From Botryllus schlosseri (lineage: Eukaryota), in NCBI GenBank assembly GCA_051294905.1, contig CM119378.1:7192001-7256000 (forward strand): a DNA stretch of 64,000 nt, in the 5' to 3' direction. Each line of letters opens with the position of its first letter. Position 1 is the first letter of the stretch. Shown in pieces: positions 5,295 to 54,800 of the stretch. Both the position numbers and the translations under genes were made by a program. The notes beneath the pieces are model-generated. The model saw only the letters and a list, made by a program, of their open reading frames with translations, had not been told where the DNA came from and did not search any database.

Positions 5295-6912
5295 CCTATT
5301 TCTGTCCATAACGATGCCAATCAACATTCAACACTTCATACTCCGCAAAAATTCCGATTGACACCATTCTGAGGGACAGCAAAATCAAGCCCGAGCGATA
5401 ACACAAATATCTCGTTTTCTTAGTTGATAGTCAGATATTTTAGTAACTAATTAGGCCTATACTTTCCAGCCGATAGTCGAGCCCTTGCTAAAACTGCTCG
5501 CGATAAGTAATCTGACGCGTTCGTTTCTGGCCGTCAGCTTTCATCGCTTCAGTAGATCTTCGGAGTACATCGACACATACGAATTAGGTCGAAGTATGCA
5601 AAGAAGTGGCAACTTCCGTGTTGAATTTTGAACAACGGTGAGCTATGTACGTAGCCTACTAAGCTGTCTGATATAACACCACGAAAAATACGCGTACGCG
5701 TTCGTTGTCTGGGTTTATCCGAACCCTCGAATTGTCAATTATTTCTTTCACAAACTTTGAAAGAAAGTTGTTTGTTCAAGCAAGCCTTCGAAATGGCAAA
5801 ATTTGATCTGAAATTTCGAATTTCCCCGTGTGTTATGAGTTATGACCTACTTACTCAAGATTTCAAGCTTGTCCATGTGCCGTTTTTGGAAGCATATAGA
5901 CAGGCTTTTTGGAATTTGAGAATACCCCACGCGGAATATACAAAAAGTTTTACTTATATCCAAACAGAAAGGGCAACGACATTTGTGTAGCTGAATTCTG
6001 AAAGAAGACGTGGAATGGAAACATTTGACAATGAATTCGCTGCATATTAATACGAAAGGGCCACTAGCCTAAATCAGGGGGTCATAGGTAGCAAAATATA
6101 ATTGGCAAATGACCAGCGATCAATACTCATTGACGTTCAGCCCACTACTCTGACGGATATAGTTTGTTTTTGACCGTTGCTCCCTGTCACAGATGGGAAA
6201 GCTATAGATGACCCGACGCTTGCACCGTCTGAAAAAAAATGTTTCAAGCCTGATAACGCAAGGAGATGTCACAAAAGAAACTATTCAGAGACTTCTAGGA
6301 TAGCGTTACCATATTTCTATGAAGCAAATTCCGGACAATCTTTAGCGCCCACTAGCGGATTTTAAAATGAGGTGTAACACATTGACCGTCAATATGGCGT
6401 CACACTATAGCAAAGCATTGCCCATCGACTGTATGCACTATGCAGGAATGGAGTGGAACATAGGTCATGAATTGGGCCATCTGTAATGTGAGCTCTGCTG
6501 ATTGCTACTTGCTAGGATCTGCAAATGATTGTGTTTGACAGCCCTGTCGGTGTGGCAGTCTATTTATGTGTTTTAATCAGGTCCGAAACATCATTTTTGC
6601 TGCCCCCTTCCGCCCAAAAAAGCACTGATCTTGAGCCCACCATGGGGTAGTAAGTTGTTGGGCACTTACTATATGCATTTGGCTGTAAAAATTTTATGTA
6701 TGAATTCTGTCAATAATATTGATTCTTCCATATATTATAGGCTACTATAAAATACACCAGCAGTTTGCACATCCGGTGATTTCCAACCTTTTATGGTCGC
6801 GACCTCATTTCCGACTTGAAAATGTTCCGGGGCAAAGCTCGAAACTTGATAAGCTGATTACTAAAAAAATTCAGCTTGCCCAAACTTACTCACGGCCTAG
6901 CAAGCTGATTAC

Positions 6913-9900
6913 GTCCAACATCATCTCGATCCCCAGATAAAGGCGAACGACCCCAAGATTTGGAACCACCGTCTGTGACTGAAGCATCCAATCGGCCTTA
7001 ACCAACTCTATGAATATACCGTTGGCTTATAATTGCGATTGCAATCAGACTTCTTTCGGTAAATGATGGGTATTTATATTTATTTTGATAGCATCGTTTG
7101 GCGAGGGTGGTGCCTGGTGCCCATACTAATATCATTATACGTTGCATTAACTCGGGCGCGGCGCGAAGAACAATTTTGAATAGCATAAATCAGCTTTAAA
7201 ATAATATTGTTTATGTTGATTTACGAAAAACTTTTGAGCCTGCTTCAAGCCTTCAAAATTCCGGACATTTAGGCATATTTTAGAAATTCCTCCCGGACGC
7301 AGATTTTTCAGTGAAATTCCGGACATGTCCGGGAAATTTCGGACGTATGGCAACCCTATTCTAGGAGTCTAGGTAATGTATAAGCTACATATCCATCTCA
7401 TGACGTTTGCGATATTGAGAAAACATACCTATCCTTTACCAAATCGTTTAGTCTTTTCGGGCTTTTCAGAAATATCACGATATGGAATCGAACGCAAACC
7501 AGGCGCATTATACTCAACTCACATCCACTCGTTAGAAGGTTCTGTAGCTTTTCCAGCACTTGGTCAGCAACCTGGAAGGTTGTTGGCAGAAGTCCTATGA
7601 AGCCCGGAAATTGCTCCTGTAGGTCAGTCGGTATGACATCAGACATGGACGGCTCGGCGAGGATGTTTTTCGCTAACAACTGAACGGTGGTGTCGTGTTC
7701 GATGCTGAAGTTTTTGGAGACGAGGATGCGCCACCGCTCCGTCAATGTGTAGATGTCCTGTAAATACATATTTTAGCATGGTACAAAGTTAGTAGTACTT
7801 AAAGTAAAGATCAATGTACGGTATGCAGTTCAATATATATATAATATCCAAAGTGCTAGAATCGATTATTTATTTTAAATTGCTTACAATGCCGATCATG
7901 TGTAAATTGAGACATGTTAAATCAATCTTGAACATATGCTAGCATGTGATACTATATAGGCATATATTACATGGACATGCAATCATTGTTTGTTAGTTTA
8001 ATGTAAAAATATTAACATAGGTCAGGTAGCGAATTTCTAGTTTCATCAGCTACTCATGTTCAATGACATGGAAGCTTCCGAGTCTATTGATATGATATGC
8101 ACGACAAAATGCAGCGCTGCACATTATTAGGACCCTATTATTTGGCAACTTAATGCATATCAGATATTTTGTATAATTATATCCTAGATTCCATTCCGCA
8201 TCGTTCTGCTTACTAATTTTACACTGGGACATTAGGTGATATAAATAAACGCATTCAATATGAAATTATCTCCAAAAGTCGTTACAAAAACAATAACAGA
8301 CCTTTGTCATGAATAATTGGCGTGAATGAGCCACAGTCGGATTGGTGGTTAGCCTCGCGATAATTTTGTCCTGAACCAAATTGCGACAAGACGACAGCTC
8401 TGCCACAAGATCCGCAAAGTGAGCAAACGCCGACGCGAAATCTCGCTCTTCTTGTCTTCTTTTCTGAAAAAAAATCTAGTTAAAACACGAGTCGCAAATA
8501 ACGTTACACCTTTACGTGCCTTCACGACAATCTCTTCGTCGTCTTGCGTGGTGACTAGATCGACGTTAGCGAACGCGATGTCGCTTGGGTAAAAAGAAAG
8601 GTTATTGTTCATTGTTGACAGGCTTCCGGCTACGTTTAGCCCGCGAGGTGTTGCCACCGCGCTGGAGTAACCTCCTCTCGAAATCAACGCTTTGTGAAGA
8701 GCTCTCAAAAGGCTGAGAATCGTGAGATTTGCGGTGCAATGCTTAATTACGCGATGATACCGAGAGTGAATACCTACCTAAGGGAAGTGCATTTAGGAGT
8801 GAGCTGCTCTCTCGTAACGGCGCCCAATATGCGGCGTTGCATGACGTTTCGAGCGCAACGAAGCATAAGGGTTAAATCGTGAGCCGCGAATTCGCACCAT
8901 TCGTCTTCGCACATTCTGATTCGTTGACGGAGCGACAGTACTTCTTTGTGCAAAATCTAAAATTTGGTAACATCGTTTGGACTGCGGCGGTGTCATAGAG
9001 AGAAAACGCCTGTACCTTGTCGACCAAAGCTTTGTTGGCTTTCATCGGCCTTCCACCGAACACAACAGTTTTCGTAATCATTTCCGGTTCTACGTGTGCA
9101 GTTCCCGTTGGGAAGAAAGCGTCCAGATAAGAATGCGGCTGTTAATCGTTAATATTACGCCGTTAACATTCCTAATTCATCCGGGTGGTTAACAGCGCCA
9201 TTTGTGCGCAATATTTCACGAATAGATGTGATATTGTCTATATGACGCCATAATCGCTTTACCAAACCGAATCTCTATATAAAAACGTGTTACCAGATCT
9301 CTCGGAGATGGCACTGGCAGTCTCATGTACTTCGTAACGGCAGCGAGCGCCTGCTTTTGAGGTCGCGTGAGACCGCTCGTGCTCCCAGTTACTCCGCCGG
9401 AGCCGGATGTCACGAAAAATCGGCCTGCGGTTGTGTAACACGCGCGTTATTATCGTGAAAGTTCAGCAACATATCTTTGGCACGCCCTTGCCTGTTTTTG
9501 TGTTCGGCATCGGTTTTCTTCTCAACAGACCGAGCGCTCGCCTGTATTCCTCTTCTGCGATGTAGACGCGTAGTTGCAACAGATCGACTGAGCAGCTATG
9601 ACGCACGCGCTTGCTAACAAGTCCCGCTTGCATGCTTTCACGCAATTGTCCGCTCTGTAATAGATCCCAATGATAATAATCATTATATAGGCTTGACAAT
9701 CACAAAATCGATCACAAAGGCGTGTCGTCTGTAACAAACAAAATGTTTCATCAAGTGAATAACTTTTCATTAGCGTTTTTTCTTCAATTTTACCGTCCTC
9801 AATCGTCACATAGCGATGTCGACATATTATGGGTATACCTGAAATGCCGTACCAAAAGCTTACGTTGAGTTGCAATTTTTGGCATTACTTCTGTAGGCTA

Positions 9901-12900
9901 TACTTTACTTTAGTATGAGCAATGACTAGTTTGAGCACTTTTGCTGTAAATATAAATATCATACTATTCATACATACCTGGTACCATAGCCAAAGTTGCT
10001 CCACCGTTTCCGGATACAAACATTTGCACTGAACGACGAGCTCAGATCCGGTACTGTCCATGCTGTTCGTCAAAAGGTTTCCGTTGACAATTCTTTTAAA
10101 CGCATTCTCCACGACAAGGCCCCGAATTCTTTCGATTCTTAAAATGAAGCATAATGATGCGGTGCCGTTGCGATGTAAATTGAAGGAACATTGTTGAAAC
10201 CTGTCCACTGCTCGGCAGAGATCCCGTCCGTCTTGGGTGATGTAATTGAGAAAAACGCGCGCTGCCTTTTCCCTCATTTGATGAGGTGTAACGTGCAGAC
10301 TAGATCCCCAAACGTCCGCCAGATGCGACGGCAGGACGACCTGATCCACCAGTATGTGAGCGGTTAATGAAGCTGTAAAACAAATAGCCAGTCTAAATCG
10401 TGACGTGCCTAACAAAATTGCATGGGTTTCTGTGCGACCAGTGTGAAACATGACAAAGACGATTTATATTTGAGCATAGCTAGACCCTATTCGAGATTCA
10501 AGTCAAGCCAAGGTATTTTGAAAAATCCCTCTAAAATGGATTAACGAAAAGATCAATGCGTGGACGTAGCCCAGATAACAGCAAAGTGATTTGAGTTGAA
10601 TGAATGAGGAGATACCAGAAATACTTTTCCTACTATGTCCATACGAAAATCCAATTCCACATATCTAGTCTATAGGCGGCAGCATTGTGAGTGTTATAAA
10701 GGTTAATTCTTTGTACGCATATATATATGAACGTGAACACTCTAATAAAGTGCTCGTTAATAATAAACGACCATCCTTCATGTAACAAAAATCGATAGTA
10801 CGGAAAATGGTCTAATTACGACGGAAAGTTGTATTTACACCACGTCTAAATATATCTGCGGTTTCGCGGAATAGGAAGCAAGAATGTTTGTTTAAAATCA
10901 TTAAAATTGAAACGTCAGATATTTTTGTACATTTTAAGGTGTTTATCAAACAAATTTCTATTCTTAGCTCGGCTCAGCAACGGAAATGGTATACTGAGGC
11001 TTGTTTATCGCGGATACTCCTATAATCTCCGCAACGAGCCGTGATTTTAGCAACTAATAGTTTTCTCTGCTAAGAGTTCACACCACCAATATTTCGAACC
11101 TCCGCGTCTTCTTACAGTGTCCGTCCGCATCTTCCAAGCATCTCGCGTTGGAAATGATGTAGGGATGACGTTTTCCAATGAGGACTCCGCGTCTCGCGCA
11201 CCACGAGATTTCAACGCATGATGCTGTAAATTTCCACCGTACACTTATTACGTTCAGTCGTAGCAAAAATATAGCTGTTTTTCCTTTTACTTTGTAGGGT
11301 ACTATCCGATGCACCTAATAATGACGTATATTTTTGGGCATTTCCATCTCTACTAGAACTTACAGTTTTGGGGGTCAAAGTACATACTGGTCTTGGAAAT
11401 TGTGATGCCCATTTGTAGCGGGACATGAGAATATACATATGTCTATTGTCTATCCAAGGATGTAGTCAGTTTCCACTATGTCACAATGAGTCTGTAACGT
11501 CATGACATTATTGTTAACTATCACTAGGTTTTCAAATGCGCCTTCTATATTGTTATCCTGCTTGCTACGCCTGTATGTGCCTAATGCCTATATCCATCCC
11601 AATTTTAAAACTTTGTATTATACTCAATATCATGTTAATTGTTAGGCGCTAAAAACCAGACATAATCCTCCAGTCTAGTCTATCAATAAAAATTTATAAC
11701 CGATAGCACACGAGCACATGGAATTTAGGTAAAAGTCACAAATAATATTTTGCTGACCTTGTCTCTCGAGAAATTTTCTTCGTAACCTGGTGAAAGGTAA
11801 CATTTTTCTTTCCTAGATTCGATCGACATCGACGCCCCCATGACAGCCATGTGGCCTATCCGCTTGTACGGGGGGTATGTGAACGGAGTTTGTGGCGGTG
11901 CCGGAGTACCCCACGTCATTTTCGGAAACATGTCCGCTTTTCCTATTAGATAAACACATCGGGAATGTAGATTTTGCAATGAAAAATCTTTAAATATTTC
12001 AATAACTCACTCTTTTGCGTGTCCACTCGGATCATCCATCTTTGTTGGAGCTCGTCAACAACCCGCGACAATCCGCACGACTGTAGACATCGCCAAAGTT
12101 TTCTCAGCAAATCCTGTGGGCGAACGGACGAGATCGCACAATGAGATCGAAAATTGATTTCGGGAATATCTAGCCTTATTTTAGGTATGCTTGACGTCGT
12201 TGCACATTACATAAGGTTAACTGTGAACCTCGATCCGTGCAACGAAGTGTGTACCTGTTCGCGTGGGTTGGACTAGATGTGGATTCGATTCGTAATTGCA
12301 TCGCGTTGTTGTAAGCCAACAGAAATTTCAAAATTACATTTAGAACAAACGAACTGAGTTGGACGGATATTGGATAATCTACGTAGGCTTAAAGTAAAAC
12401 TTCTGTAATATTTATTCTTCGAAAGTTTGGGAGGATAATAAATAATCTCGAATATTCAACGAACGTTGGGTTATGTGACATCAAAACCAGACGCGGTCAA
12501 TAACGAAGTATATCTATTGCCTTCAATACTTACTCAAGTGAATATAATATTAGACTATACTTCCAAATTTAACAGTTTTCAGTTTTTGGCAGAACTCTTC
12601 CTGTAATACTTACCTTTATACTTATCTGCAAAACTCTACTTCTACCTGAGTACAAACGATGACTAGTTTGACCACTCTGTTGAAATCAAACAGTAATTTC
12701 AAACTTAATTTAGAAGGAAGGAACTTGAGTCACTTGTTGAATGCATGATTTACAAGAGCATGAAGTCAAAATTATGTTTGTTTTATCGGGAGGTGGGTAG
12801 AATAAGAAATAATAATCTCCAGCATTCAACGGACATAACATTTTGTGACATCACAACCAGAGGTGGTCATGGACGAAGTACTTCTACTTTTTCTAAGTAC

Positions 12901-15900
12901 TCAAGTAGGCGTTGCCTGTATACTTGCACTTGACTCAAGCGGTTACGATTTAGACTACTACTTCTACTTAACAGTTTTCAATTGTTTATACAAAATTAGG
13001 TCTAGAATACTGCTTTTACTTACTTGGAATTTGCTACCGGTACATGTGCTGGAGTAGAAATTTACGACGTCATTTCTACTTCTACTTCAGAACCAACCAT
13101 GACTGCTTTTATCACGTCTGATCACTGCCTGGATAGCGTCACACACTCAAAAGCTAACACCTCAGTGGTCGGGTGATTGTAATACCGATACATCTTCATT
13201 ATATTAATAATCGCTGTTAACATTTTATCAGATACGTACTACAGTAGAATATGTCAGATTCAAAATGAAAGGCTTGTGATCTCATAAACATAAGGAGTAT
13301 GAACCTCCAGTGTCACCCCCGTTTCATTCATTGCGACTTTGCTGTCTGTGATGACATCACCCGATTCCCAATTAACTCGCCGTCTAACTGCAGCTGAATT
13401 GGCGATGTTGTCCGCAAAGGTCTGAGCCGCAGAGTCATTCACCTATAGAAACCACAATAATTTGACGAAACCACTACTTACGGCGCAATAAACTGTTGAT
13501 ATAGGGTGATAGAATTGAAAAGTCAAGAACAGCAAGTCGGAATAGCTGCGTATAGACGAAAGGGATATACTGTATAGTGCAGTGGTTCTCAACCTTTTTT
13601 AGACACGCCGCCCTTTATGATAGTGAAAAATTTCGCGCCCCCTTCCCTTATCGTCATATCACAAAATCCAACCGGGATGCTAGCAACCCCAACATATTGT
13701 TTGATGGCATTAAAAGTTATGACTGTTGATAAGATAATTCAAAAATATGAAATTCGGTCTAGAGAAACACATGTGAATTGGAGGTAAATCGGGCAAAGCA
13801 CGAAAAAAATTTCCAATTGACCGCTTCTTCGCGCCCCCCTTCAGATGCTTTCACGTCCCCCCAAGGGGGGCGCCCCCCCCCGGTTGAGAACCACTGGTAG
13901 TGTATAGAAAAGTATTGATGGACTCGATTGTTACTGCACGCCCGCTCCATTACAAACCTGAAGTGAAAGTGGTACAATGCCGCAAGCTTCTGCGCTATAA
14001 CCGATAATACCTTTTTTTGGTATAATTATAGGATTATTTTATCCAACTCCTATATATTATGGGTGACTCCGCATTTTAGTGATATTGAGTCTCCCTGTGG
14101 ATACCGATTAATGTCAGTTTAACGATTAAAAACATCGTTATTGTAGTACTTGCATAATTATTACCAGTACCTTCTGTATTTCATGGTTAACGAAATATAC
14201 AACTATCACTGGATTTGTTGTTGTAATAAAAAAGAATAACTTTTCTGCGTACCCTACAGTCCAGATTATTGCAAAAACATAGGAACATATATCGCTTACC
14301 TCTACTGATGGTATTTGCACGATCGAACCGGCAGATACGCCGGGTAACTCTTCAAGAGCTCCTCCGCGGCTTTGCTGTTGAGGCCTCAAGGGCGGCGTCC
14401 CGGGGATATTGGACGCGACCGGTGGAAACAGTGAGTGTGAAGTCATTAGGGGAGGTGTTGCCTCGGGCATGATGGACTAAAATGTCGACACGGTGCTTAA
14501 CAAATTAAAGAACAGCGAAATACGATGGAATGTACACTAACGTTTTTGTTGGATTCGCGTTGATGCTCTGCCATACTGATACCGACATCGTGGCTTTGAA
14601 TCTCGCCTTCTGATGCCCTTACTGCGTGCTGATTGGACTTCGGTATCTGGGATACGATGATGCCATCTTTGCCTTCTTTTATACCAGGAAGGGAGGACGC
14701 GCGTGACTCAACAATCTGGTGAGACATTGAACAGTCAGTGCAGTGACGAATAAAGCAATTTGAACCGAAGAGAATGTAACGGCCAGGAATAGGACGATAT
14801 GTCTAGGACAGTTAATATATGAAATTTATGTGGCGTCGCAACGTCAACAGCGTAATGCAGTGGTCAAGGTGTTCAGACTCTCAATATTCCCTCCCCTTAA
14901 ATCAAGATATACTTGAGTGATCCCACTAGTTAATTCCTGGAAAGCATATGCGTAGAGGTGGTCACTGGTCAGTGAAGAAGTAGCCTACTTCTGCTTGTTC
15001 GGAGTAATTAAATACGTCTTGCCTATTTGCACTATGTACACTACTTAATCTTTTTAACCTCCTTAAATTTTTAATTTCACAAAGTCGTAAGTTTCTTTGG
15101 GGTATCTTTGCACAACTTTTATGCGCGGAATTGTCATATAACAACTCGGTTGAATAGCCCCATTCTCGCGGTAACTGAATTATTTTCGAAAATTGCACCA
15201 ACTTGTAGTGCCATGATGTGTCATTTTGCGGTATTCATAAGATGCATTTCGAAATTTCGCAAGTAGAAACCAAAAATTAACTTCCAAAAGTATGCGACGA
15301 CTCGACCAAATCTACTTCTGGAACTACCGCCTTGAATACTTTTCATACCTTCATTTTATACTTCCTCTTGAAGTTATTTTGACGTATCTTGTAAATCGCT
15401 CCTTCTATCTGTACTCGAGTAGGGATTTATGACGTTACTTCTAACGATTACCACAAACCACATCAGCGTGTACAACATTTTCGTACACTGCATGGCTTTT
15501 TATAGCATCATGTCCAATTGCTCATTTAATGTAGGCTACGCCTACAGAAAATACCATGCTGTAACTTTGTGTTGATTAGATGCAGGATGATATTTGGTGC
15601 CATGTGCATATAGGCCTACCTTATAAGCCTACTTCACATTCAGCGGTTTTTGAACCTGTCTGCTGCTAAATATTTGGACTACATACACCAACCTTGACAT
15701 TTTGCTGCGACGGGGTTGTCCGTAGATTTGTATTAGCTGCATAAAACCACCAGGCTCTAATTGCTCGCTTTCTCTGTTCCAGAAAATTTACGACAGAGCC
15801 GCTATTCATCACAACTCCATTGGATGCGATGACACCGTGCTGTTCTTTTCGATGACGGTTTCTGAAAAACAAAGGAATGATCTGCGATGTGTTTGTACTA

Positions 15901-16311
15901 AAGAGCGTGTAATTCCCACAAGTATATAGTGCATCGTCCATCCATCAATTTATACGTCAAAATGCATTATGCTTTGATTCTTCACGCATAGGCTACAACG
16001 GATTTAGTTCATAACAAAAAGCACATACAAATTTCATTCAGTATTCCTTGTAGCAATTGGGATTACAGCATTTACCTATCATTTTCTGATAAAAGCTCGT
16101 CTATTTCTTTCGGTGGCATTCCTAAATAAGATAGAAGCGTGCGAATATCCTTTCTCCGTAGATGTAGGGATACATCGTACAAAAACTCATCGACGTCCAG
16201 CGTTTCTAAATAGGGTTAGAACCTCGCGATATCTCGGTAAGAAACGATGTCGAATCTGTTTTTCATCTCACCATTATCGAACATCAGCGGACGAGTTTGT
16301 GTCGAAGTCAT
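6913..16311 (-). CDS. Uncharacterised multi-exon gene: N-terminal death domain + DEDD-C/TRADD-N-like domain + unrecognised C-terminal region (about 978 aa modelled; both ends unresolved)
   Basis: Phase-consistent GT-AG exons (minus): 16311-16272, 16205-16076, 15861-15693, 14715-14542, 14476-14300, 13442-13305, 12113-12011, 11942-11787, 11243-11100, 10372-10201, 10137-9978, 9654-9471, 9424-9294, 9138-9016, 8956-8778, 8712-8526, 8463-8302, 7757-7523, 7125-7051, 7007-6913. Death-domain-like FLYDVSLHLRRKDIRTLLSYLGMPPKEIDELLSEN...FLEQRKRAIRAWW...DLLRKLWRCLQSCGLSRVVDELQ. DEDD-C-like VEQLWLWYQSGQLRESMQAGLVSKRVRHSCSVDLLQLRVYIAEEEYRRALGLL. The donors at 11100 and 8526 are weak. Possible extra 5' exons are 17508-17460 and 16401-16371, and a possible extra 3' exon is 6351-6310. 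Confidence 0.6.
13580..13896. mobile_element. hAT-like MITE in an intron of the death-domain gene
   Basis: TIR CAGTGGTTCTCAACC / GGTTGAGAACCACTG. TSD not clean. Related copies near 2360-2661 and 52480. Confidence 0.8.
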
Positions 16312-17562
16312 TATTATCAGAACTCTGCTGTAATTAATAATTGTGGTACAGCACAGGTCGTTTGGTTTACATCGCTCGGCTTCGTGAATCTAACATGTAG
16401 CCTGGAACAAAAACCATATTGGCTTTATGTCTCAACTTCGTATTCATGATCCATATTCGATCATTCCAGCTATTTATTTTTTCCCGACACCTTATGTGAT
16501 TTAATATTTGCTAATATCTATCTAAAGAGGTTCCACTAGCTGTATAAGAGAATCCATCGATCTCAATACGTCCCGAAACGCCGCGGCAAATTCCCTCGCT
16601 TGTGTATCCTTGATATCAAATTCCGTGACACGGGTTATTGAAAGGCTTCGCTTAACGTGTAATCTTTTGGGTCATTGTGATTTTATGTTTACATGAAAAC
16701 TGGCAACATGGCTCGATCTCCGAATGAGTATTTAAAATTTAGGTGTCGATTCCATTTACAATCAAGCCTTCTGTATCATTGGTGCGCTGCTATCTGCACT
16801 GTGCTGTCCTTGAGATATGTTACCTTGCCAATCCTTCAATTAAGTGAAACCCACTGAGTTTCATGAAGTAACCGTAAATGTAATCGAAATAGTTTTAGGA
16901 TCAATATGATAGGACCCATGTGTTATGTGTGATTAACGAATACCGAACCAAATATCAGTAGATATCGCATAAGGTCATTTCAATACTCATTATCTTACAA
17001 CAACGCGCTGGATAATGTTGAGAATATTTTGAGAATCGTCGGAATATTAATTCCAAGACTATTACTCAAATTATTCTACGCAACATACACATTTCAGGTT
17101 TAGAAACTCAAGATGATCGATTTAAAAAGCAGGTGCTGATGTATGATGTTGGTATGAAATCGGATCGCTTAGTAGGGCGGGGCGTTGCTTATGTTCGGAG
17201 CCGGGGCGATTCAACAATACGCGAACCTATAACCTTCATACTTTGATCAGGAAGGCTACCGCAATTCGTGATGGCTTGGTCGTTCGCATGCTGTAAGCTT
17301 GTGGGTTTCCCACAGAACACCCTCTGGGCCTTTATTAACGCTTCCTGGTTTCAACCGATCGTGCACATACTTTGGATATTTACACTTCCGTACTATATAC
17401 CCCACATTCCTTCAAATAATCCGGTCACATTTTGTCGGTAAAATATCCGCTGCTCTTACCAGAAAATAGCCGTATGGCATTTACCAAATGTGAAGTCAAA
17501 TCGTGCATGCTGCTTGAACCAGCCGCCGTAATGGCGTATATTGCATAACCAATAACCATACT

Positions 17563-19999
17563 CATAGGCGCCGACTTTTATTTTTTTACGAGGTGGCGAA
17601 GTCTTGTGACGTCATAATTGTTCCCTATCGATGACGTCATCGTCGCACGAAAACGCACTTTACTGCATGCCGCTGGCCTACGTGCAGAGTTAAACCATTC
17701 GCGTGACGTTTTAATATCGGCCCTGCACTCATTAATATCAAACCATGCAGTCGAGTTATTAAATAGAATCTTAAAACGGTACGATCATTTGAAGTGTAAC
17801 TGCGGCCTGCGCTACCAGGCCGTCCGACGGAATCTGCAGTTGCATCAATGTTATTCACGCGCAATGCCCAATGTGACTAACGAAATGCACTACGCCTTGC
17901 AAGTAACACACGACAACTCTCGAATACTTCAAGCAGACAATAATGATGATTACAAATGCGAAATCGCGCAGCCAATCAGTAATTGTCCTTTGCGGTTTCT
18001 TGCTTGGCGTTGACGGACTCGCATCGCCGCAATTGTTTGATGATTAAAATATTGATGCAGTTCTCGATTTAAGTTCGCGAAGCATTTCGGTAGTATATCG
18101 GTCAATTCGTAAATTTAATCTGCATGTCGACGGCCGCCAACGCATACTAATTGAATCACGTGTTGACGGCCGCACAAATTTCGTTCCACGGCCGCGGGTT
18201 CGCCACCCTTGGGCTAGAATTAATTTCACTTTCGGACGCATGCCGCGATCATACCAATAGAAATCCACTGTCTATCTTATGCGTAATAGTTTAATATTCG
18301 ATAATGTTGTTCTCGATACGAGTACATCCAGCAATCAAGTTTATCGGAACGTAGAAGGTTCCCTGTTCAAACGAATTGAATAAAATCAGAATTTGTGCCA
18401 CCCATAATCTTGTGATGCATCACGTTAATAATGAAAGGAAGACTGAAAAATGTCTTTGTGCGACAATTTCGGAGTACGAATGTATCAAGTATATAACAAA
18501 AAATATGGATGATGGCAAATGAGAAAGCGTAAAATCTAATCAGTATCGCCACGAATCGGTTTTGAGTGTGACACCGTATTGAGTAGCTTTCGTCGCGACA
18601 ATTGCTTTCACATTATATCGGTGTTTAAGCTGTATTGCTGCATTTCCCGATTAATGTCACTGGCAAAGCCTTGTTAGAGAAACGATTCTGGGCAGAAATG
18701 AATTCCAATTTGCAGGCACACACCAACACACCCTCCAATTTCGCGCTCCGATTACCTATCACGAAGCTAGCTAGCCCATGAATGGTTTTGTAAACGAATA
18801 TGGGTGCACATAATTTAGATTTCAGAAAAGCAGAACATAGAGGAGATCTAGGATGGTGCTTCTCAGCACACGCTAGGCGCGTAGCCAGTCGAAAAATTAG
18901 GGCGATTTGGATTTTTTCAAATTTACCAATATAGCATCAATTTAATTAGGGTCAAGTACAATGTGTAAATGGCGATCATATAATCTCTTCGAATCAACGA
19001 TTTTAGGCGTATGATAAGCTTGCCAAAGAGTCCTGGAGTGCTGTCAATTAGCGAGTCACTGATCTCTGGTGAACAATTAAATACGCGCGCAAATCAAAAT
19101 GTCCGAACTTCATTGCACCGATTGCAAACCTTTGTCGTATTTCAGAACTCGAGACATGCTACACATCTTCTGGTCGTTACGTTCAAGTATTAGCGGGAAT
19201 CAATTTCGCACGTTAAAGTCTGTTTGCAGCGATTTGATGTCATTCAGTTTCGCGATGTCGCTTTTTAATCAATATGACATAAAAAAACGATCACTAGCGT
19301 AAACTCGACCGCATTGTCTCGAAACGAGCGAGAGATAGGAGCCAAAGCACGCTAGGGCCGAGACGCGATAGTTAGGCCATAGGCCAGCAATGATATCTTT
19401 CACTCCAGGCCTATTGCAGATGCTATTGTGTAGGCTAGCGATGATATCGTGCACACCAGGCCGAAGCCACCAATGCAGATTCGATTGCGCAGTTAAGCGA
19501 CGATATAGTGTGAACTGGGCCTATTGCAGATGCGATTGTTGACGCCTGGGGAACCAGGTTTGATCGAGACGCGATAAATCATGGTAGCGACGACTGCCAC
19601 GCGCACGGAAATGAATCACCTAATTTCGCGGCCATCTCAGCGGGAGATCGTCACTAATTGACAACACGGTTCTCGCAAATCCGCCGCGCGGAACATTCAT
19701 TACACAATTATTGAATTGCAACTGAATATTAGAGTTAGAATGATCATTTCAAAATGACGGGGTTTCGCGTTTCAAATAGAAGTTCGACCCCCAAAACCCC
19801 CGTGGCTACGCGCCTGGCACACGCGCGTATCGAAATCGAAGACGTCTCTAACGAGGTCGCATCGATTCGCCTTATTACTAATTACTGGTCACAAATGACT
19901 TGGGCGTTTGAGCATTTTATATACGAGGTGGCCGCCACCTCGTAAATATGGTCACGAGGTGGCTGCGCCACCTCGTAACCTCGTAAGTCGGCGCCTATG
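17563..19999. mobile_element. Composite non-autonomous hAT-type element, 2437 bp
   Basis: TIR CATAGGCGCCGACTT / AAGTCGGCGCCTATG with subterminal ACGAGGTGGC repeats at both ends. 8-bp TSD ACCATACT / ACCACACT (7/8). No transposase ORF recognised. Confidence 0.8.
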
Positions 20000-38200: not shown

Positions 38201-41200
38201 ACACCTCTGAAATAACTTCTCGACTTTTTCGTAATTTCGCGACTTCATCTGAAAGGGATTGTCGCCGAATTAGAACGAATCAGACGCGGTAACTTGATAC
38301 CAAATTATGACCCGCAATATTGTGATATTTACCTGGTGAGTTCGTGGAGACACACTTCACATCGGGAATAGGTGAAAATATACTCTACAGTGAGCGAGGA
38401 ACTATATTTGTGTCGATCTTGTAGTTATAACTATACACTGCACTTTGTCCACTAGCTAAAATGCATGGAGTAACACTCGCCTCGATTTGGAGCTGCTTTG
38501 TGTCATATGTACTGTCTACGTTACAAGATATCATGACATCACTGAATAGTCAAAATTGTTTCCACCCAAATTTCAATTTCAGTACCGCCAAGCTCATAGC
38601 GAACAAGATTTACGTATGAGTTTGTGCGTAGCAGTTGCCACGCGATTTATGACAAGACGACCACCATTCAGGGTACCGTAGTCAGGAAAGGAACTAGGTG
38701 GTGTCTTGCAAATTTTCGATTGTGTTTAAGGGCGTAGCTAGTCGGAAAAGGAGGCTTTTAATGCCGGTCATTCTTTTGAAATTAATTTGTGTAGCACCGC
38801 CGTAGCCGGATTATACCGATACTACAACGATCAGAGATAACTATCCTTGTGCTGACAGCTCAACACATATAGAGAAGCACGATCCGAAGTCGACAACGCG
38901 CGTGGATCATGTTACAACACAGCCGGAGATGTAAGATTTTGCGAGTGGTTGAAATATGCATCATATGACTCGCTGTCATACCAGATTTCAAATATCATGA
39001 TATTCAAGGCATAATATTTTATGCGGAGAAAGTCGAAACCACTTGTAGCAGTCTTGAGTAACGAACTATTTCATAACTGGTCTGCAGTACATCTACTGTT
39101 CGTGCTGTCTTATTTCATAAAGAATTATGTTCCTTTCGCATCGGTTGACAGCGGCGCTCTGCACATCTAGATTAATTTCGTTATGCCTTATGCGTTGTCA
39201 GTTTAGGATCAATATGCTGTCAGCAAACTCAAGATAGTACAGCTACCCAGAGTTAAGATGGTGAATACCATTATACAATGTAGTGTGTGCTATAGAATCG
39301 CCAATAAACATGAAGCTCGCAACAAATTTCCCCACCTCCAATGCGTTGCTTTTGTGTCGCTGGCGGAGTAAATTACTCTCATTCTCACAGACGAGAGAAA
39401 AAAGGCATCATCGTATTGTTGTCAAACGCGCGTGGCTAATTGTTGATCAGTGCGAACAATCGATCATGCCAATTTGATATTTTAACATGAGATGCATTCG
39501 AATTTGCCTATGAGGTTGCTCACACAAACGAAACACCCCTCTGCCTACATCTCTATTAGTTCATCAATGTGAACAAAATCTCCAAAATCAGCATTAAAAA
39601 TGCTTGCTGTGGCTTACTTTAGCCACATACATAGACATCGTGGTTCATACGCGACGGACGCGAGAGATTGACAGTCAACGTCAAGCAACGATGCTTACAG
39701 ATACCTGAGAGCCGGCTTTTATCAAACAAAACCCGCCAACCTAGTTTGTACCAATAAAAGGAGTTCGTGTTTTATCTAAAAATAGTACATTGAGCTTAAG
39801 CCTCGATTGCTGGAATAGTCATGCCGGTGACGTCATATTCGGTGCTACGATTGTTATTTGTTGATATACATTATACAATGTTATCTTCTTTTCAATTCTC
39901 TAGGATCTCTACTCTAGTTTCCGACGATTACCTCTGGCGAAAGTCAGCCCTAAATATTCGGGTTTACTACAATATTAATATAATATTCAATTGCCTGTAG
40001 CCTGCAGGCCTACCAAGACGCCATCGGCGAAATCCACAATAGATAAGCAACGTCGATCGGATACTTGTCCTCGGCTTCCGCTCAGGCATGGCCGCGCCTA
40101 CTTATTCAAAATTCGACGCAATGCTGATTCGTAGTTATATTTGAAAGTACAGCATTGTCAGCCGTAACGCGACATACTGGTGGCTATATCGTAACCAGAG
40201 GTGGTCACTGGTCAGTAACGAAGTACTACTTATTGAAGTAGCCTACTTAAAGTAGATTTTGCCTACTCGCACTACTTACCAAGTAGTTATGATTTTCGAC
40301 CACTTCTACTTGACAGTTTTCAGTTTTTTGGACAAAAATAGGCGTAGAATAGCTACTTACTTGTGAACCGGCACTCCTATTTCTACTTGAGTAGAAATTC
40401 CGGCGTTACTTCTACTTCTATCTAGGTAGCGACGGTGACTACTTTGACCATCTCTGATCGTAACTAACGCAATCCAGAAGGATAATAACAGAATGGTCAG
40501 TGCGATGCCACAAGGTTGTCGCGAATGGAAGCGATAGCGAAATCACCACAAAAGATCTTTGACCTTCCCGAATTTTGCAACTATGTATTGCAAGTAGGGC
40601 TGGGCACAATGATTCGAGTACTCGAATCTGAATCGACTATTAATTTTAATGATTCGAGTGGAGTAGTAAAAGACGATTTTTTCGAGCACCGAAATTATAC
40701 GCTCCTCGCCACTGAAACTTCATTTATCAAGGAGAATTATAGTTTCGATACTAATTTTCACTGTTGAAGCCTTGAAACCTTGATTGGCCGTAAGGTAGCA
40801 CACGAAACATATACGAACGTAACTGGATATAGCACATTTCCGAAGTCATGATCATCCCACAACATTGTCACTAAGTGAGTAAGTGCAGTATGGTCGAAAA
40901 AATACCTAAGTATCTTCAATGTGATGGATAACAGTATGGTTACCATACGTCCTCTTCTAAGAGGATTTGTCCGGTTTTGCAAGTTTGAAAATTTTGAAAA
41001 AGTGTCCTCTTTTCAGATTTCCAAAATATGATAATCCTAGATTACAGGCATAATACTCTTTGTGGCGACAAAAAGGTACATATGTCAACCATGGCATGTT
41101 ACATTTTCTTATGACGTCATAATGAGGGATACTTGATTACTCGACTCGAAGCATAATACGTGATTTAGAATCGAATCACTCAGGTACTCGATTTTGCCCA

Positions 41201-51866: not shown

Positions 51867-54800
51867 CTATATACTACAATATAAAAATGAGAAATAGCAC
51901 AGACATATTATGGGTTTGTTAATTCGAAGTGTAGGACTGTGAATTTTGAATTCAAACTAAAGTTGGACATCTTTTGGCCAAGAAGATGATTCAGGACCCA
52001 TCTCAGTTCAAGAATTGAAATTGACATACCTCACAAGTGGCAAGTTCTCAGCATCGTAACGCTTTCTAGTCTCTGCAGTTGTGTACGCAACTGAAATGTA
52101 AGCAAAGATACAATATTACTGTGAAGATGACAATGGAAGCAAAACATCTAGCGTAACTATTGGGCTTTGAATTGTTTCAGTGTCGGATCAATTTGAATTG
52201 CATCATATTTCGCCTTGGTAGCAAATCTTTTCAAATTGAATAGGTTGTTCAAATCTGGAGGGCCAGATACTATCTTGGCAGCAATGATGGCCTCAGACAC
52301 TCTCTGGATGACTGAGCTGAGTCAGGAAGATGTAACAAAGGGGTTTCCACACTAATTAACTGCTTATTTTACAAACCAACCGATCCAAGCACCTGAGATT
52401 TATGATTAATGTAAGCTAATTTATTCTGGAAAACAGTCAGTTAAGGGATCATACCACTATTGGCATTTAATATTTGGAGCAGTGGTTCTCAAACATTCTT
52501 CGACACTCCCCCTTGATGATAGTAGAACATTTTGCACGCCCTTACACCAAAAAAATATTTAAAACGCAACCAGAATGTTTGCAAGATTCGTAACGCATAG
52601 TTTCGTGGCATGGAAAGTTATGACTGTTGGGAGACTTCTCAGATATGAAATTCGGACTACACACAGAGAATAATTGTGCTGGAGGTTGATCACATGGAGC
52701 ACAAAAAAATTTTCAGTAAAAAACAATCATGTAGGCCTACAATGTGCTTACGGATATTTTATCGATTTTGGCATCTAATCCATTCTACTACCCCACTCAA
52801 ACGCCCCTGATTATAAGCTAAAAAACCAATGGTGTGGGTTGCAACCGTTCGACAAGAGAATTATTCAATTGATTACTTTCAGGCTGCCATATAAAATACC
52901 CTTTTTAAGAGTTGCATTCTACAAAATGTGTCCTAATTGAACTCTGAGTGGCTACTTCGATGTTCAAAGCCAGTGGTTCCTTCCCAACCTTTTTCAACCC
53001 ATCGCCCCCTATTTCAAGCTCAACACCGATCATCGCCCCCAAATTTTGTGTACTGAAAAATGGGCATACAAACTGTAATCACCGACGGGTTGACTAAAAA
53101 AAAAAAGTCAGCCATTTTGACGCGTCATCGCCCCCCCCCATCGCCTCCTTCACTGTTTTCGCCCCCTAGACTGCCAAATCGCCCACGTTGGGAACCACTG
53201 TTCTAAGCCATTTCGATATAACCCCTACTCAGATTCGAGAGGCATATTATGCATGCCATATGGCATGACTTTATAAGGAAATTTCTTATTTCTCTATAAT
53301 TTTGTGCCCTTCTACGCACTCTACACAGATGCTTGACAGACAGACCCTATAGGCATCAGGTAACAGCCACAATGCCACATGCATTCACCAGTTACACGTA
53401 ATTCAGAGTCATCTTCTGATTGGTGCAAGGTATGTTATCAGTCAAATTCTAGCATCAGTGCATGGATAGTACGACACATTTATGAGATTTAAAATATATA
53501 CATTTAGGATTATTGCCGTCGTTGAAACTTGGAAGTTTCATCACCAATCAAACTCGAGACACATAACTTTTCTCAGGCAGCTTCCCCCCCCCCCCCACCA
53601 GAAAAAAACTGCTTTCTTGCTCCCCAGTTGGAGTTAACCACTGGTTTAGAAATTATAACAATACAAATAATCCAGTATAGATATGGTCACATGAATAGGC
53701 TTACCTTCTGCTGTATCGTCTTCCAAGACACCAATCAGATAGCACGATATTACAAAACCGAAACACTGCAAAAATAATAGGAGTTTATTGATTTATGATC
53801 TTCACAATTTCCTTACAAACACTAAAATGAAATATGGTTCCCATCTACCAGGTGTCAAAACATGGAAACACGGGATAGCTGAGGGAGATTGGGATGTATG
53901 ACTGTGGATTACAGTGTACTATTGCACATAAGGGCTGTTGAAAAACAGTTTTTTCTTTCAAATTTCACTAGCTACATGATGAAATAATTATTTTAGCTAA
54001 AGCAACGCTGCACACCACATTTGGCTCAATTCCAGCCAGTAGAAGCGAGGTTCTTGCAGTAGAAAGTGGCGACCCCATAAAATTGTTAGGCTGTCAGTAG
54101 AGACAATGCACACCAAATTTGGCTCAATTCCAACCAGTAGAGGCTAGTGGTTGGAATTGAGCCGAATTTGGTGTGCTTAATCTCTACTGACACCAAAACG
54201 ATTTTATGGGGAAGACAGAAAATTTGTTATTAAAAAAAAAATTCATAATAAATATAAAAAATTAACTTGACTGAAAGAACCTCGCTTCGACTGGTTGGAA
54301 TTGAGCCAAATTTGGTATGCAGCGTTGACCTAACAATTTTATCACATAGCCAGTGAAATCTGAAGTGTGAATAGTGAGAACAAACAAGGGTTTAGAAACA
54401 AACATACCACGTGGGATGGGGGGAATTTTCTCATACTTACAGCAAGTATTATTTGCAGTCCTGATTGAAATACTTCGATATATCGATAATCTATAACACA
54501 GGTGCTGGTTGCATTTGTGGAATCAAGTAGAAAAGAGCCAGGACTGGAATCGCATGAAAATGAGGTGTTTCGAAACCATGAATAAGAATCCAACAGAGCC
54601 AGATTTACTGCAACTGAGTGCTCTTCCTAGATGTAAACAAAAAGTATAACGTAAAAGCAGTCGTGTGTACCTATAACAGAAATCAAACTTACCAAATTCA
54701 ATATCCCGATGTTCAAATACAAGCAAACCAAAAATATGTTCCAACCAACCCAAAACAGTGTCCATGCAGAATACTAAAATATAAAATATACAGCTTGAAA

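Follow-up and report, generated by a model that had tools for sequence, protein, structure and literature searches.

A tunicate gene for a probable adaptor with a predicted death domain divided by a long, separately encoded insertion

Gene layout

We analysed a stretch of 64,000 nucleotides of the Botryllus schlosseri genome (NCBI GenBank assembly GCA_051294905.1, contig CM119378.1, positions 7,192,001 to 7,256,000 of the forward strand), hereafter called the window, in which positions are counted from the first letter. Its minus strand carries a gene (Table 1) that probably encodes a tunicate-restricted, constitutively spliced adaptor of about 950 residues. The death domain of this protein appears to be discontinuous, the loop between helices 4 and 5 (H4-H5 loop) being formed by a conserved, disordered insertion. 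Three exons, named A, B and C, encode this insertion between exon 3 and exon D.

The first base of exon 3 finishes the codon opened in exon 2, and the exon ends in phase 0. Its reading frame, from 15860 to 15693, closes with RAIRAWWFYAANTNLRTTPSQQNVK, the terminal residues being TTPSQQNVK, and exon D opens in phase 0 with DLLRKLWRCLQSCGLSRVVDELQ (also given as DLLRKLWRCLQSCGL). Exons A, B and C are open frames with AG acceptors and with the donors GTTAGT, GTAAGC and GTTCAT, respectively. The donor of exon 3 is GTTGGT, and the donors of exons 3, A and C are non-consensus. The G+C content of exons A-C is 0.49-0.58, compared with 0.37-0.40 in the surrounding intron. On the minus strand, the coordinates, lengths and phases of the exons and all five translations quoted in the initial annotation are confirmed. 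The insert comprises 163 amino acids in the window and 141-191 in relatives. It had been described as rich in Ser, Pro and Gly and probably disordered; the disorder is predicted also by low-confidence AlphaFold2 modelling, but the compositional richness is only mild (S 13%, P 8%, G 7%). The last coding exon of the gene lies at about 6226-6140 on the minus strand.

Table 1. Features of the adaptor gene and of its introns, in window positions
Feature	Position	Strand	Basis
Whole gene	6140-16311	-	tblastn with P0007 and P0008 as queries; collinear with orthologues of 952-965 amino acids
Coding exon 1, 40 nt, ATG at 16311, ends in phase 1	16272-16311	-	Sequence read; aligns to the N-termini of P0007 and P0008
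Exon 2, 130 nt, predicted death-domain helices 1-3	16076-16205	-	AlphaFold2 helices 18-28, 31-40 and 45-52 of P0007
Exon 3, 169 nt, extended H3-H4 loop, predicted helix 4, start of H4-H5 loop	15693-15861	-	AlphaFold2 helix 82-98
Insert exon A, 174 nt, phase 0/0, opens with [IV]VES.(T/S)..LP	14542-14715	-	Sequence read and orthologue alignment
Insert exon B, 177 nt, phase 0/0, motifs SLFPPV..GTPP and IVQ[IV]P.[IV]E	14300-14476	-	Sequence read and orthologue alignment
Insert exon C, 138 nt, phase 0/0, last codons ..GVTLE	13305-13442	-	Sequence read and orthologue alignment
Exon D, 103 nt, phase 0 to 1, predicted death-domain helices 5-6	12011-12113	-	AlphaFold2 helices 285-298 and 302-311
Next exon, start at 11942, 3' boundary approximate	11755-11942	-	Near-invariant ADMFPKMTWGTP..PPQTPFTYPPYK.IGHMAVMG block; alignments
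Exon with most of the probable TRADD-N-like alpha+beta domain	9978-10372	-	Alignment, AlphaFold2, Foldseek, Atlas features
Interspersed or duplicated repeats, non-coding, intron C-D	12441-13125		Repeat search
Interspersed repeat, intron B-C, copies at 2407-2661 and 52479-52659	13579-13895		Repeat search

Orthologues and the exons of the insert

When 1.84 billion representative sequences were searched by phmmer with the conserved downstream exon 9978-10370, no more than five proteins were matched. This search and two profile searches returned tunicate proteins only, with no relative from beyond the tunicates in which an ancestral, uninterrupted domain might be preserved. As far as the searches reached, the family appears to be restricted to tunicates, and each genome assembly examined holds one locus. 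The full-length relatives are those of Styela clava (952 amino acids, P0008), Ciona intestinalis (985 amino acids, X1 and X2) and Clavelina lepadiformis (994 and 966 amino acids), together with two further tunicate proteins, P0007 (965 amino acids) and P0009 (944 amino acids). An N-terminal entry of 327 amino acids was also recovered from Phallusia. P0007 and P0009 derive from contigs (L004 and L008) of 3.3 kb (Logan SRR32906208_40631) and 3.1 kb (JGI Ga0193200_1003826). Both are intronless, with an uninterrupted open reading frame that includes the insert, and both are assembled transcripts.

Sequence criteria alone are weak for exons A-C, because 66 open segments in phase 0, each of 120-240 nt and bounded by AG and GT, occur in 6 clusters within the 3.6-kb intron, compared with 15 +/- 9 in shuffled sequence. 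Exons A, B and C are true coding exons on the strength of homology, since orthologous proteins align to all three in the expected order. With P0007 and P0008 as tblastn queries, matches to the three exons in the window follow one another in the expected sequence, flanked by those to the domain exons. The conceptual window protein including A, B and C aligns collinearly with the relatives from all six other tunicates. Between the window and P0007 or Styela, the nonsynonymous difference in exons A-C amounts to 0.38 and the synonymous difference to 0.84-0.87, and the nonsynonymous difference in the domain exons is 0.13-0.14. These are raw proportions of differences; the ratio of nonsynonymous to synonymous rates (dN/dS) is not computable because synonymous sites are saturated. 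The values therefore indicate that the insert is constrained coding sequence, with a rate of evolution about threefold that of the domain.

Short conserved motifs are found at both ends and in the middle of the insert. In exon A the residues V114, S116, T118 and P122 (numbering of P0007) are invariant. Conserved anchors close exon B (the second motif listed in Table 1) and exon C (..V(A/T)[IV]....(V/I/E)TLE), where the final three codons specify the invariant residues T284, L285 and E286 of P0007. The insert is bounded by ..QQxVK and [EDK]LLRKLW in Styela, Ciona, Clavelina, Phallusia, P0007 and P0009.

In Styela the exons measure 28, 130 and 166 nt, then 177, 156 and 141 nt, then 103 nt, with phases as in the window. 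Ciona has counterparts of the same size for exon 3 (166 nt, ending in phase 0 as in Styela) and exon D (103 nt), and four exons for the insert: 154 nt (phase 0 to 1), 110 nt (1 to 0), 135 nt and 171 nt. In Clavelina four exon-sized matches span the insert, and the exon order of the window recurs in another ascidian, represented by contigs from JGI metagenomes. The three exons marked out by the initial annotation in Botryllus are kept in Styela with the same phases, and all relatives carry the insert.

The predicted death domain

AlphaFold2 was run on residues 1-345 of P0007 with an alignment of five sequences from five species. The model contains helices at residues 18-28, 31-40, 45-52, 82-98, 285-298 and 302-311, with a predicted local distance difference test (pLDDT) of 65-85. 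Residues 102-280 are modelled at a pLDDT of about 30, and the insert, 174 residues in this protein, forms a low-confidence H4-H5 loop. Helices 1-4, encoded by exons 2 and 3, and helices 5-6, encoded by exon D, are packed into one six-helix bundle. Helix 5 begins at residue 285 and exon D at residue 287 of P0007.

Comparison with known structures was possible across the insert with VIA-align, in which stretches of low confidence are removed. After this trimming, the model can be superposed on the Fas death domain with a Z score of 10.2 (87/87 residues, 2.2 A), and on those of TNFR1 (Z 8.7), RAIDD (8.2), RIPK1 (7.9) and DR3 (7.8). In a structural search of 48,161 PDB chains that is independent of Foldseek, the top seven matches are all death domains: ankyrin-G (Z 9.3), PIDD (9.1), TNFR1 (8.8), Fas (8.2), RIPK1 (8.1), p84 (7.8) and FADD (7.7). 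Death-fold domains make up at least 45 of the 50 best matches in this search. The DED, CARD and PYD subfamilies rank below death domains at lower Z, so the bundle is closer to death domains, by modest margins. Language-model features of residues 1-113 of P0007 point in the same direction and are taken as a lead only (65 of 100 matches are Pfam Death clusters, score 0.85).

Sequence-based methods gave little. The Pfam Death profile (PF00531) matches residues 269-291 of Styela P0008 at positions 63-85 of 86, with 12 bits and an E-value of 0.24, which lies below the cut-off of 22.6 bits; the split by the insert, together with sequence divergence, is probably the reason why the threshold is missed. 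Seven single-exon translations had no match in Pfam, and the other full-length orthologues no Death match. PDB sequence searches with an N-terminal profile and with both halves of the domain returned no death-domain match. With the whole model, Foldseek yields E-values of only 3-10, because the insert breaks the local alignment.

In view of the full-length superposition on death domains, we accept the region as a predicted six-helix death domain with the insert in the H4-H5 loop. In the initial annotation, the flanking exons had been read as portions of a single death domain, and the exons between them as a long loop within it. The AlphaFold2 model and the VIA-align superpositions support the former, and the position of the predicted-disordered sequence between helix 4 and helix 5 agrees with the latter.

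The loop between helices 3 and 4 (encoded in 15693-15861 of the minus strand, residues about 55-81) is also unusually long. A conserved G.VV.G.S.[VI]NF motif within it takes the shape of a small beta-hairpin in the AlphaFold2 model, where confidence is low (pLDDT about 50).

The remainder of the protein and its surroundings

Residues of about 430-580 of P0007, encoded by window positions 10372-9978 and neighbouring exons, are modelled by AlphaFold2 as a beta-alpha-beta-beta-alpha-beta unit with a pLDDT of 65-87. Among other ferredoxin-like folds, Foldseek matches this unit to the TRADD N-terminal domain (1f3v_A) with a probability of 0.98 and a weak E-value of 0.03, and the structural matches in Swiss-Prot include TRADD from three mammals. 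The Atlas features assign TRADD-like_N with 0.82. Pfam analysis of the full-length orthologues found no TRADD-N match. The unit is a probable TRADD-N-like domain, and this assignment may serve as a lead only. Disordered and helical segments follow on its C-terminal side. Immediately behind the death domain, all tunicate orthologues share the nearly invariant block ADM[FY]PKMTWGTP.PPQTPFTYPPYK.IGHMAVMG (11755-11942), modelled at a pLDDT of 42-58.

The introns that flank the insert exons contain repeat families with 70-75% identity between copies, including a further pair at 12855-13123 and 40193-40459. One of these families has ends that are G/C-rich and look inverted, and it resembles miniature inverted-repeat transposable elements. 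Exons A-C do not overlap the intron repeats at 12441-13125, 13579-13895, 14954-14990 and 15303-15444. An Rfam scan of positions 6000-18000 had no match. A nested gene on the plus strand was considered and ruled out, as that strand has only short open reading frames without matches. In Clavelina (L002:10777-12151) and Ciona (L003:18194-26916), a CRAL-TRIO/RhoGAP gene on the opposite strand is the next gene downstream, an arrangement suggestive of conserved synteny between these two species.

Discussion

Death-fold domains signal via helical polymerisation with three fixed types of contact, and in canonical death domains the H4-H5 loop is a short turn. In contrast, the H4-H5 loop described here comprises 141-191 predicted-disordered residues, to which three or four exons are dedicated; the H3-H4 loop, too, is extended and carries a predicted hairpin, and the Pfam Death match stays below threshold. 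The likeness to the death domains of Fas, TNFR1, PIDD, RAIDD, RIPK1 and ankyrin-G lies in the full-length superposition of the predicted bundle (Z 8-10, root-mean-square deviation 2.2-3.1 A) and in the placement of the domain in an adaptor-type protein. In a limited search of the literature we found no account of a death domain with an insert this large.

Our model of the protein is as follows. Helices 1-4 would be provided by exons 2 and 3, and helices 5 and 6 by the last codons of exon C together with exon D. The H4-H5 loop would be expanded by about 160 residues of fast-evolving, predicted-disordered sequence from exons A-C, and the six-helix bundle is predicted to close across it. The order of the probable adaptor is an N-terminal death domain, a probable TRADD-N-like domain and a helical C-terminal region. 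In death-domain oligomers, helix 4 and the H4-H5 loop make up the type IIa surface (PMC11874512). The insert is therefore probably a flexible tether, a docking segment or a regulatory segment. As a permanent flexible segment on the IIa surface, it might modulate or cap homotypic assembly; it may also confine the adaptor to certain positions in an oligomer, or bear docking or modification sites.

Several points weigh against this model. For the fold there is a single AlphaFold2 model, that of an orthologue with 73-86% identity to the window protein in the domain exons. This model was built from an alignment of only five sequences, with a predicted template modelling score (pTM) of 0.37 and no predicted aligned error (PAE). 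Sequence profiles stay below significance (Pfam Death 12 versus 22.6 bits, covering helices 5-6 only, and empty PDB sequence searches). Z scores of 8-10 can be reached by chance for helical bundles, although the matches here are specifically death folds and full length. Constitutive inclusion of exons A-C is deduced from relatives and annotation models, and the role of the loop is pure inference.

The initial annotation proposed that exons A-C are skipped en bloc, with 15693 joined to 12113. In certain tissues or conditions, splicing would then yield a compact death domain that differs in assembly or in its partners, and would switch the adaptor on or off. We regard such a switch as improbable. 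The frame would be kept: the introns that flank the insert are in phase 0 in each of the mapped genomes (the window, Styela and Ciona), so that an en-bloc skip is always in frame. Each of exons A, B and C is symmetric in the window and likewise in Styela; one-by-one skipping is not generally possible, because Ciona has two insert exons of asymmetric phase and Clavelina has four exons. The non-consensus donors of exons 3, A and C in the window (GTTGGT, GTTAGT and GTTCAT) would suit the proposal, but these weak donors are not kept in Styela. A remaining H4-H5 linker of about 13 residues appears sterically plausible, and in-frame exon skipping beside a death domain is a known device in MyD88S (PMC8772076). 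On the other hand, the invariant T-L-E that opens helix 5 is encoded in exon C and would be substituted by ..NVK, for which reason skipping would not simply restore the native, compact domain, as had been assumed. The insert, which includes conserved motifs, shows purifying selection, and it is present in every full-length orthologue and N-terminal fragment recovered from seven species, the two RNA contigs among them. Cluster members, JGI contigs, short N-terminal fragments and NCBI isoform sets of these seven species contained no skipped isoform, and the annotated isoforms differ elsewhere (X1 and X2 at the N-terminus in Clavelina and by one residue in Ciona). Conserved intronic sequence, which often accompanies regulated cassette exons, was not found near the insert, blastn of the window against Styela aligning only the domain exons and the next exon; this test is weak, because divergence is large enough to saturate synonymous sites. 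The proposed on/off switch is hence not borne out by the forms present in the seven species, all of which include the insert. Inclusion of exons A-C appears constitutive, and the insert is probably not removed by splicing.

Other readings concern transcript ends and the unity of the domain. An internal start or an early stop within the insert would yield a four-helix N-terminal fragment and a long protein without helices 1-4. The newest NCBI annotation of Ciona does list an N-terminal gene of 208/215 amino acids and a separate gene of 781 amino acids with its ATG in the equivalent of exon B, and exon B of the window contains an in-frame ATG as well. However, the split in Ciona reflects a retained GT-AG intron of 58 nt within the insert region (L003:9913-9970, AP043568.1), the splicing of which restores a frame of the 985-residue type, and earlier Ciona models are continuous with 985 amino acids. 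The internal Met of exon B is not conserved in P0007 or Styela, and full-length transcripts are available from two species, which leaves this reading quite improbable. The ATG at 14727 is intronic, just ahead of the acceptor of exon A. A nested transcript starting there, which the initial annotation had also raised, is unsupported, because orthologous transcripts read directly from ...QQxVK into [IV]VES. The low pTM, the five-sequence alignment without PAE, the non-significant Pfam and PDB sequence searches and the Foldseek E-values of 3-10 for the whole model would also fit a four-helix module and an unrelated helical hairpin from exon D, packed together as an artefact of AlphaFold2. Yet 87-90 residues of the trimmed model can be superposed at 2.2-2.5 A on experimental death domains in their entirety, and death domains are the best of 48,161 chains. 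In the sole Pfam match, exon D corresponds to the final helices of the Death profile, and both halves are the most conserved N-terminal parts in all species. Two unrelated modules are thus very improbable. A further possibility, which we consider unlikely, is that the insert acts as a built-in gate of the IIa surface, keeping the adaptor monomeric or capping until the loop is modified (by phosphorylation, cleavage or binding of a partner) or spliced out en bloc. If this were true, death-fold polymerisation would be controlled from inside the domain, of which our limited search of the literature found no account.

The predicted protein may be compared with known adaptor systems. Adaptors with cores of death-fold and TRADD-N domains are known from marine invertebrates (PMC8195603). 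Like TRADD, DEDD2 and the families that have expanded in invertebrates (Kaur et al., 2021; PMC8195603), the protein would combine a constant core, made of a death fold and a probable TRADD-N-like domain, with variable flanks. Unlike in TRADD, the death domain comes first, and the TRADD-N match is only a lead (Foldseek E-value 0.03, none in Pfam). Unlike the adaptors of that study, the text of which does not include tunicates, the family appears confined to tunicates and has a long helical C-terminal region. MyD88S, which arises by in-frame skipping of MyD88 exon 2 (PMC8772076; PMC3812059), shares with the present gene an in-frame exon beside a death domain, the removal of which in MyD88S changes oligomer assembly. 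MyD88S, however, loses the intermediate domain outside the death domain, as shown by transcripts and function, whereas the exons described here lie inside the predicted domain.

The data at hand lend no support to a death domain switched on and off by splicing, and this proposal should be taken up again only if junction evidence is obtained. Profile methods miss the death domain of this family, probably because of the insertion, which matters for the annotation of immune and cell-death gene sets in tunicates. A disordered insertion on one contact surface, found family-wide and conserved over a long time, would be an unusual natural variant of the death domain and might reveal ways in which assembly is limited or regulated from within.

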